A stretch of 64,000 nt of DNA from Asterias rubens (lineage: Eukaryota): NCBI RefSeq assembly GCF_902459465.1, contig NC_047062.1, positions 28,582,001 to 28,646,000 on the forward strand. The letters are read 5' to 3'. A model generated the notes under the pieces. It was not told the DNA's origin and did not search any database. It saw only the letters and a program-made list of their open reading frames with translations. Both the position numbers and the translations under genes were made by a program. The number at the start of each line of letters is the position of its first letter. Position 1 is the first letter of the stretch. Of the stretch, positions 14,801-17,225 are shown piece by piece.

Positions 14801-17225
14801 TTTTGCCAGTAGGGGGGCCTGTCCTCTTCTTTTTTGCTTAAGCAAACGATCTAAAATCTTGCGCGCACAGTTTGTTTACGTGCTTATTTAGCATTGAGGT
14901 AGAATAGTTACAGCAATTATTTTTGCTTACCGTTAAGCAGCTCTATGAAATTGGGCCCTGGGTCGACTCACAAAGTCCTTACTTAGGACTAGTCCTAGGA
15001 GAGATATTACAAACTTAAGGCTAGTCCTAAGTTAGGACGAGTACTCGTCCTAACTCGAGATAAGACTAGTCTTAACTATCTGATAAAACGACCCAAGATC
15101 AGTTTCCCAAGGCAATCTTGTACACCATTTAAAGACAGTGGGGACTATAGGTAAATGTCAACGACCAGTTTTCTCACTTGGTGTATCTCAACATATGCAT
15201 AAAATAACAAACCTGTGAAAATTTGAGCTCAATTGGTCGTCAAAGTTGCGATATATTAATTAAAGAAAAAACACCCTTGTCACACCCTTGTCACACGAAG
15301 TTATGTGCTTTCACACTGTAAACAAATTGGGTAAAAAATTCCCAACTTTTTACCCAATTAAGGGCGAATAGTGAACTCCTCCAACTTTTGGGCAAAATAT
15401 TACCCATCAAAGTTAGGCACTCTGATTGCCAAACAATTGGGTAATATTTCCTCATCAATAGTTGGGTATATTTTGGTAACCAACAGTTGGGTAATTTTTT
15501 GTTTACCTATTTTCTGGGTATTTAATACATTATCAATAACCCACTAATTGGGCGATGATTTTATTAATGATTTAACCCTTTTCGGTGTTATCCAACAAAT
15601 GGTGAATGTAATTAACCCTTTGATTTACAGTTTCTTCTGTGATACGTCATACAAGCAGGCGTAGAAAATATCTTTTCCACGATGGCAAACGGTGATGAGC
15701 TGTGACCTTCCAAGGCCTTGGCATCTCTCTCAAAATCGAGAGGGTGCTCAGTGGTTCGTAGATGCTTTGGAAGGTTAGTTTTTAACTAAATACAGTTTGT
15801 TTCCTGTTCAGTTGTTGTACACAGTCGTGACAGTTGCAGCGCAAGCACACGCATACATGCCACAACCGGCGTTGCACATAATGGCATGATAAAACTGAAA
15901 CTAAAAACTGAAACTAATTCAACAGTAGTGTCACTTTGTTGCTCCCTCTGCAACTGTCCGACTATGTACGACTGAATAGAAAACACAACTTCATATTTAG
16001 TTAAAAATTAACCTTCAAATTTGATCTATATCTACTGGAAAACCCCGCTCGTCACAGCCACTCCTCCACTCGCCATGTTGGAAAATATCGTTATGTTTTT
16101 TCATACCTTGCCCAACTTTTGGCCAACTCTTTGATCGTAGTGCGCATGATCGGATGATTTTGACCAACTTATGTGCATCATTTTAAAACCAACAATCGAA
16201 ATTAACTAAAATTACCAAAAAAGTTGCTCAAATAAATAAACAACAGTGTAACCAACAGTTATGATAAATTCAGATTACGAATTATTTGCCCAACACTTGC
16301 CCAAATTTTGTTCCGCTTTTTAAACAAAAAATTTGCAAACAAAATGTTTGTCCAACACCAATTGGTTTTGTTGGGCAATTATCGCCCAATAATTGTTGAA
16401 GTTACTTTGCCCAACAAATGATTTGACCAACGTTTTTGCAGTGCAGATGCTTGATTTCGAGACCTCAAATTCTAAATCTGAGGTCTCGAAATCAAATTCG
16501 TGGAAAATTACTTCTTTCTAGAAAACTAGGGAGCCGTTTCTCACCATGTTTTATACTATCAACCTCTCTCCATTACTGGTTACCAAGTACGGTTTTATGC
16601 TAATAATTATTTTGAGTAATTACCAATAGTGTCCACTGCCTTTAGCAAGACGCTTTACCATTGCTTCGTCCTTCGGATGAGACGTAAAGCCGTTGGTCCC
16701 ATGTGTTGAGTAACGCATGTAAAAGATCCCAGTGCATTTATTGAAAAGAGAAGGGGTTCGCCCCAGTGTTCTAGTGCACCGTGCACCCTTATAAGGTGCT
16801 AAATAGTTGGGTCTCAGAATTTCATAACTTCAATATCCTATCTTTCTGAAAGTTTGTATAAACTAATGACTTGTCCACATCCCAACACATCCTTATAACT
16901 CTTTCCGTCTAGGCCCAATTTCATAAAGCTTTAAAGGAGAAAATACTGCTTGATAATTTTCCTTGCTAAGCAAAAATTAGGTCGGAAACCAGCCAAAACA
17001 ATGCAAACTAATAATGAAAATTGGGCTGATAACCCGTTTCTGAAAGCAATACTCTTCTTTGCTTAGCGAGTTCTTGTGCTTTATGCTTTATTTCTACATG
17101 TAAACATTGAGTATAGTTTGTATTGAGCGAATTACTTACATTTGTAGTTTGGATAGACACCCAGTGAGGGCCCCGACCTGATCATCTTCGCTTGAATCAG
17201 ACGAGTAGCTTCTTCTGCTCGCCAT
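11888..17225 (-). CDS. C11orf68: C11orf68/UPF0696 (DUF1917) paralog 1; exons 17225-17140, 14258-14040, 13468-13313, 12308-11888; 293 aa
   Basis: All introns are GT-AG phase 2 and the exon lengths 86+219+156+421=882 nt are in frame. The translation (FDPSDY..PSK..GIGWI..GD.EGL..AW..L..SGNWLLF..IDEAW..AKV..SVYTRDFTD..YKPRFYSIIGVY..NKW.L.P.IY) aligns end to end with human C11orf68 as recalled. Confidence 0.88.
13005..13270. repeat. Dispersed repeat with a ctgaagacgagcagagtatactgttcgaaacgtcgag core (second copy about 43720-43975)
   Basis: Two homologous copies with inverted-repeat structure (gggtacaaccatg...; gagccggtttggtc / gaccaaaccagctc). Confidence 0.6.

Follow-up and report, generated by a model that had tools for sequence, protein, structure and literature searches.

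A shared first exon encodes a candidate CRM1-type export signal in part of a tandem array of Bles03/C11orf68 genes of the sea star Asterias rubens

The Bles03 array and its 86-nucleotide first exon

The stretch of DNA analysed here (the window; 64,000 nucleotides, nt) belongs to Asterias rubens chromosome LR699092.1 (GCA_902459465.3), at about 28,582,001-28,646,000, and carries a tandem array of Bles03/C11orf68 (PF08939) paralogs, all on the minus strand and numbered here as copies 0 to 6. The C11orf68/Bles03 family is conserved from archaea to humans and has an eIF4E-like fold, and we know of no established function for it. The subject of this report is an 86-nt first exon found in copies 0-3 and the short amphipathic peptide that it encodes, a candidate nuclear export signal (NES) for the export receptor CRM1. 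Copies 4-6 have a different first exon (~54475-54663) and also differ in exon 2. Of copy 0, the first exon alone lies inside the window, and the remaining gene lies to its left. The 86-nt exon is present at five minus-strand sites, at each of which it supplies an ATG, 28 codons in total plus 2 nt of the 29th codon, and a phase-2 donor.

17140..17225, minus strand: copy 1 exon 1, donor AT/GTAAGT, splices to 14258
14040..14258, minus strand: copy 1 exon 2, linker and beginning of the Bles03 domain
13313..13468, minus strand: copy 1 exon 3
11888..12308, minus strand: copy 1 exon 4, stop codon included, Bles03 core
25951..26036, minus strand: copy 2 exon 1, included in XP_033630109.1
24528-24746, 22780-22938 and 21886-22306, minus strand: copy 2 exons 2-4
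2561..2646, minus strand: copy 0 exon 1; the coding sequence (CDS) of XP_033630329.1 begins at 2646
3593..3678, minus strand: second copy of copy 0 exon 1, in a 1.1-kb repeated block adjoining an N gap
36681..36766, minus strand: copy 3 exon 1, divergent, length and phase unchanged, encoding V-SA-L-VDG-L-NK-L-T-L
34564..35116, minus strand: copy 3 enlarged exon 2, in which a 2-bp deletion near 34763 splits the exon-1 frame from the Bles03 frame

Four of these exon copies (3593-3678, 2561-2646, 17140-17225 and 25951-26036) are near-identical, and the fifth (36681-36766) is the divergent one. Donors read AT/GTAAGT in copies 0-2 and CT/GTGAGT in copy 3, in phase 2 throughout, and at 14258, 24746 and 35116 a polypyrimidine tract followed by AG makes a canonical acceptor. 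Splice models were obtained by searching GT/AG combinations near homology boundaries. For copy 2, the junction 25951>24746 leads to a protein of 294 amino acids (aa) that is identical to XP_033630109.1, with a gene span of 4151 bp, and for copy 1 the junctions 17140>14258, 14040>13468 and 13313>12308 yield an intact 293-aa open reading frame (ORF) with GT-AG introns. An earlier note on this DNA, made from the letters alone, had described an 86-nt ATG exon with a phase-2 GT(A/G)AGT donor at these five sites and had proposed that it splices in frame to exon 2; coordinates, length and phase all match, and the two gene models agree with the splicing.

A 51-nt probe taken from the exon gave 4 matches where 0 were expected. 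Copies 1 and 2 agree at 96.5% of exon 1 positions; exons 2-4 have similar values (92-97%) and the flanks lower ones (77-92%), so that by this comparison exon 1 appears to evolve as coding sequence does. A six-frame scan of the 64 kb located the acidic and hydrophobic peptide, on the minus strand, at the five exon sites and at one stop-broken chance match (18068); it found no such peptide upstream of copies 4-6, in keeping with the earlier observation that the module is missing from those copies, which use the other first exon. Because of the probe matches, the higher identity of the exon than of its flanks and the recurrence of the peptide at five sites, chance does not explain the exon. It is very probably the genuine first coding exon of an asteroid-specific C11orf68/Bles03 subfamily comprising copies 0-3. 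A transposon origin was also considered and excluded: the neighbouring repeat stops ~80 nt upstream, and the exon does not show repeat-level depth.

Not all of the exon copies count as separate evidence. The copy 0 and copy 1 loci (1-5646 and 8428-17681) are 99.5% identical over >7 kb, introns included, and are separated by a 500-N gap (4055-4554). The block at 2899-4054, which carries the 3593-3678 exon, is 99.7% identical to 16446-17601 of copy 1, and so is the adjacent copy 0 stretch; the block repeats the neighbouring 1.1 kb and ends exactly at the N gap. The 3593-3678 exon is probably an assembly duplicate, and copies 0 and 1 may be very young duplicates or assembly/haplotype duplicates. 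Because of this near-identity and of the block at the gap edge, these exon copies are not independent, and the informative comparisons are those of copy 1/0 with copy 2, with copy 3 and with other species.

Use of the exon by copy 1

The RefSeq model of copy 1, XP_033630449.1 (272 aa, CDS 14281-11888), omits exon 1. Its start ATG precedes the exon 2 acceptor by 23 nt, at a place that belongs to an intron in copy 2, whereas RefSeq uses the exon for both copy 2 (XP_033630109.1) and copy 0 (XP_033630329.1, CDS from 2646). The spliced copy 1 protein differs from the copy 0 protein at one residue, Asp10 in place of Gly10 (A, not G, at 17197). From these comparisons, XP_033630449.1 is probably under-annotated and lacks its first exon.

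Contigs of four RNA runs, dominated by repeats and able to show presence but not absence, held no spliced exon 1-exon 2 reads at copy 1 and gave a depth of approximately zero over both exons. The sole contig over copy 1 exon 1 is unspliced, crosses the donor and comes from a marine metatranscriptome. When exon 1 alone was used to search for runs, no organism-specific RNA run was returned, only two metatranscriptome runs sharing 0.33 of its words; a search of transcript-derived proteins with the N-terminal 60 or 80 residues as query returned, apart from RefSeq models, only ORFs called on genomic DNA over exon 2. Contig depth was concentrated in the repeats at 15.0-15.4, 16.4-16.8 and 17.2-17.6 kb, where it reached millions, and the whole-gene run search chose uninformative runs because of the high-copy repeats in and near copy 1 intron 1. 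Very high-copy repeats occupy 15049-15442, 16428-16821 and 17216-17600, that is, copy 1 intron 1 and the sequence just upstream of exon 1. Since contigs prove presence and not absence, the splicing claim is based on RefSeq models in three species together with comparative evidence.

Two related alternatives would restrict the peptide to copies 0 and 2: the copy 1 exon could be unused, with translation starting at a downstream ATG, or copy 1 could be a haplotype of copy 0 that was duplicated by mistake. The start of XP_033630449.1 at 14281, the failure of the four RNA runs to cover exons 1 and 2 and the near-identity of the two loci on either side of an N gap are all compatible with one or the other. 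Both are nevertheless improbable, as copy 1 has an undamaged exon, donor, acceptor and ORF, almost the same as in copy 0, and the copy 0 model uses the exon, while the start codon chosen by NCBI falls in copy 2 intron sequence and the repeat-dominated contigs have little to say about absence. Use of the exon by copy 1 is considered likely.

The export-signal-like motif and its conservation in sea stars

Two segments of the copy 1 exon are of particular interest.

17181..17204, minus strand: acidic serine-rich run SSDSSEDD, residues 8-15, just before the motif
17140..17177, minus strand: NES-like segment, residues 17-29, V-GA-L-TGC-L-SK-L-Q-M, with the codon of the last anchor (phi4) split by the intron

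The second segment matches the pattern phi0-xx-phi1-xxx-phi2-xx-phi3-x-phi4 through V17, L20, L24, L27 and M29 in copies 0-2 and through V, L, L, L and L in copy 3. The spliced peptides that the earlier note had given for copies 1 and 3, with their V-xx-L-xxx-L-xx-L-x-M/L spacing, were recovered as written there. The SSDSSEDD run resembles a cluster of CK2-type sites, and comparable runs occur in Patiria, copy 3, scallop and centipede. A Pro/Ser-rich sequence follows phi4.

Conservation of the hydrophobic spacing in orthologs had been set beforehand as a check, and the spacing is kept in both of the other sea stars compared. In A. amurensis the exon peptide is found in three proteins, one of which has Ile at phi0 and reads I, L, L, L, M at the five anchors, and in a copy-3-type gene (four genes in all). 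In Patiria miniata, of another order, exon 1 is 89 nt long and ends in phase 2 at a GTGAGT donor, the acceptor is canonical and the phi4 codon is split in the same way; in its peptide a run of Asp precedes V-GS-L-TSR-F-SS-L-S-I (anchors V, L, F, L, I). Among nine distinct sea-star peptides from three species, few of them independent, the anchors are kept while the spacers vary. Copy 3 exon 1 cannot be aligned with that of copy 1 as DNA, and its peptide is ~38% identical, but length and phase agree, and the acidic run is there along with the five hydrophobic positions.

These comparisons bear on whether the pattern could be a coincidence, namely a low-complexity disordered leader without specific function whose pattern persists by shared descent only. 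Most copies are recent duplicates, which leaves few independent comparisons, and between A. rubens and A. amurensis copy 3 exon 1 has 2 non-synonymous and 0 synonymous changes, as might be seen in such a leader. Over the exon, however, copy 3 and Patiria each have only ~40% identity with copy 1 and still share its five positions, acidic run and phase (copy 3 also its length), and similar N-terminal motifs in a mollusc and an arthropod occur far above shuffles (see below). Coincidence is accordingly judged very unlikely. Other short-motif readings of the peptide, namely the eIF4E-binding Y-x4-L-phi motif, the MIT-interacting motif 1 (MIM1) of the endosomal sorting complexes required for transport (ESCRT), the LC3-interacting region (LIR) and a 14-3-3 site, were rejected as unmatched or not conserved in the sea-star peptides. 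In a protein language-model atlas, residues 1-45 fall in Bles03 clusters only.

Copy 3 departs from this pattern in its reading frame. Its exon-1 frame continues for 147 codons through exon 2 and then stops, the Bles03 frame being +1, so that the frame shift described in the earlier note was found again. The 2 bp near 34763 are present in both A. amurensis paralogs and missing in A. rubens. The A. amurensis copy-3-type gene has a homologous ATG, reads through into the domain and is annotated with a 362-aa product, which implies an ancestral copy 3 whose tail was in frame. The condition in A. rubens may be a recent, pseudogenising frameshift or a sequencing or assembly error.

Structural context of the tail

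An AlphaFold2 model built from a 68-sequence alignment had a mean predicted local distance difference test score (pLDDT) of 84 and a predicted template modelling score (pTM) of 0.80, with values >90 in the domain and a fold that begins at about residue 55. Residues 1-35, where the alignment is shallow, have a pLDDT <50, no secondary structure and a position outside the domain. The motif is thus predicted to be accessible in a disordered tail, as export signals are. The human structure PDB 1ZTP aligns to residues 51-269 only (phmmer E = 8.7e-31); judged from this alignment and the model, the sea-star proteins share the alpha/beta domain of the solved human structure, and the tail amounts to about 50 residues ahead of it. 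With a mass of 33 kDa, the protein is small enough for passive nuclear entry, and for this reason an export signal would have work to do.

Similar motifs in the wider family

The N-terminal pattern was sought in 120 family representatives sharing <=50% identity, with >=3 Asp/Glu required in the eight residues preceding the five anchors and the whole placed in the first 70 residues. Seven of the 120 matched, against 0.46 expected; the shuffle maximum was 4, 0/1000 shuffles reached 7, and a control with reversed spacing gave 1 match. Two of the seven look unrelated, with one placed inside a fused domain and the other inside a repeat; a transcript of the centipede Eupolybothrus cavernicolus is among the credible cases. 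The five-anchor spacing is found at the same place in scallop proteins, with two Asp/Glu in the preceding eight residues, which is below the threshold. The first helix of the fold was also considered as an alternative site in vertebrate-type proteins: a four-anchor class 1a pattern occurs in the helix-1 region of 17/110 proteins and in the N-terminal extension of 13/110, with no overlap.

An intron position shared between sea star and scallop was considered and rejected, because the Argopecten motif lies at the beginning of exon 2 instead of the end of exon 1; for the same reason, homology of the motif across phyla is a candidate only. In Argopecten irradians, Bles03 has alternative short first exons, and its isoforms include (284-288 aa) or skip (233 aa) the N-terminal motif, which hints at isoform-level control.

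The earlier note had contrasted the sea-star copies with human C11orf68, for which it reported no such module. Comparison with the human protein agrees that an exon-1-like module is absent, but the contrast calls for a qualification: when Kirli et al. surveyed CRM1 binding by proteomics, human C11orf68 showed RanGTP-stimulated binding (stimulation 100, enrichment 13, low bound abundance) and was filed as 'Ambiguous' (PMC4764573). In the same study the Xenopus oocyte homolog reached 66 nM in cytosol but 11 nM in the nucleus, and its nucleus:cytosol ratio is given as -0.77 on a log10 scale (PMC4764573). As the human and Xenopus proteins do not have the sea-star module, the proteomics gives no more than a lead that nuclear exclusion may play a part in the family. 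A search for literature on UPF0696 in echinoderms found none. On a broader view, an N-terminal acidic and class 1a module would be an old and recurrent bilaterian feature of C11orf68/Bles03, represented by sea stars, a scallop and a centipede, that was lost or replaced in vertebrates, and the array would be split into exported (0-3) and non-exported (4-6) paralogs; we hold this view to be doubtful.

A proposed export mechanism and its main rival

The best single mechanism for the tail, to which we assign a probability of roughly one in two, is that it acts as a CRM1 export signal. It presents a run of serines and acidic residues and then an amphipathic stretch with the 2-3-2-1 spacing of a PKI-type (class 1a) signal; in PMC13041915, which cites Guttler et al. 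(2010), class 1a denotes the 3-2-1 spacing of the PKI type. The ~33-kDa protein would leak into the nucleus, where CRM1-RanGTP would grip the tail and so keep copies 0-3 cytoplasmic. Phosphorylation of the flanking serines could tune this export, and copies 4-6, with their other first exon, would be without export control. Of the earlier claim that the exon carries a conserved CRM1-type NES, the conservation of the five-anchor class 1a spacing and the placement in a predicted disordered tail were upheld, while the diagnostic value of the spacing was weakened, since it also matches a buried helix. A role as export adaptor, which the same note had suggested for the paralogs, gained no support from the analysis.

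Several observations weigh against the export mechanism. One or two glycines occur within the motif, and the tail has no helix in the AlphaFold prediction. A buried helix at residues 225-237 of the copy 1/2 proteins (~12060-12100 in copy 1) fits the five-anchor spacing, and this match recurs in most family members, so that the pattern by itself is weak evidence and the helix serves as an internal case of a false positive; export signals are moreover overcalled by sequence-only scans (PMC13041915, a preprint). To these are added the missing human counterpart and the 'Ambiguous' class of the human protein, the broken frame of copy 3 and, for copy 1, the short RefSeq model together with the RNA searches described above, in which spliced reads and organism-specific runs were missing and the only contig was unspliced.

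The main rival accepts the exon as real and the amphipathic stretch as selected, and assigns the stretch to something other than CRM1: a docking helix for another partner, or a regulatory lid on the Bles03 pocket of its own or a second molecule. Conserved hydrophobic positions would suit any amphipathic binding helix, and the same spacing recurs in structural helix 225-237. In the human crystal, an N-terminal helix lies in the putative binding pocket of the neighbouring molecule, and a regulatory role has been proposed for it (PMC4159009); that helix, however, comprises residues ~55-68 and does not correspond to exon 1. AlphaFold2 leaves the tail undocked on the domain, at the low confidence given above, and the eIF4E-binding, MIM1 and LIR motifs that would name another partner are unmatched or not conserved, while the acidic lead-in, the 2-3-2-1 spacing of five anchors and the Pro/Ser residues after phi4 are typical of export signals. 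The rival is therefore regarded as possible, though less probable than export by CRM1.

A signal of the export type, conserved and accessible in one group of paralogs, would place those proteins out of the nucleus, and a split into exported and non-exported paralogs, if true, would be the first functional handle on the C11orf68/Bles03 family. Such a signal also fits the proteomic hint of weak CRM1 binding by the human protein. The class of signal is well known and much of the locus is already annotated; since RefSeq includes the exon for two copies, what is gained is modest and a matter of interpretation. For users of the reference, three issues deserve attention: the probably short XP_033630449.1 model, the 2-bp frameshift of copy 3 and the likely duplication artefacts around the gap.

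Other features of the window

The last exons of the array, which carry the PF08939 domain, are as follows.

11888-12308, minus strand: copy 1 last exon, PF08939
21886-22306, minus strand: copy 2 last exon, PF08939
32770-33147, minus strand: copy 3 last exon, PF08939
41249-41617, 48153-48533 and 52009-52380, minus strand: copies 4-6 last exons, PF08939
40761-40992, minus strand: partial extra last exon (fragment)

Against Pfam PF08939 (DUF1917; gathering cut-off 23.1), copies 1, 3 and 4 scored 79.8, 69.5 and 48.1 bits in their last exons, and copy 1 exon 4 matched with E = 4e-22. In A. amurensis, a RefSeq model (XP_071797111.1, 488 aa) combines two units of the copy 4-6 type in a single two-domain protein. 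A 311-N gap (24949-25259) interrupts copy 2 intron 1. A minisatellite with a 54/78-nt period (37286-37911) lies ~500 bp upstream of copy 3 exon 1 and creates long spurious ORFs on both strands.

Comparison with known systems

Among annotated records, XP_033630109.1 and XP_033630329.1 contain the exon spliced as proposed here, whereas XP_033630449.1 is without it, and no record annotates an export signal. Human C11orf68/BLES03 (PDB 1ZTP, 2Q4K) is likewise a small soluble protein with the PF08939 domain, but it has no counterpart of exon 1, its N-terminus leading almost at once into helix 1 of the fold. There is a single human gene, in contrast to the sea-star tandem array with its two kinds of first exon.

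In relation to PKI-type class 1a signals, the sea-star motif differs in its one or two glycines and in having no predicted helix, and it is a candidate drawn from sequence and prediction. It resembles them in its five anchors at 2-3-2-1 spacing, its acidic and serine-containing lead-in, its location in a disordered segment and the helix breaker after the last anchor. MEK1, a member of an unrelated family, has a proven leucine-rich N-terminal export signal by which a small, diffusible protein is excluded from the nucleus, and the arrangement is alike in that the signal of MEK1 and the candidate signal of the sea-star proteins each lie in a flexible tail before a compact domain.

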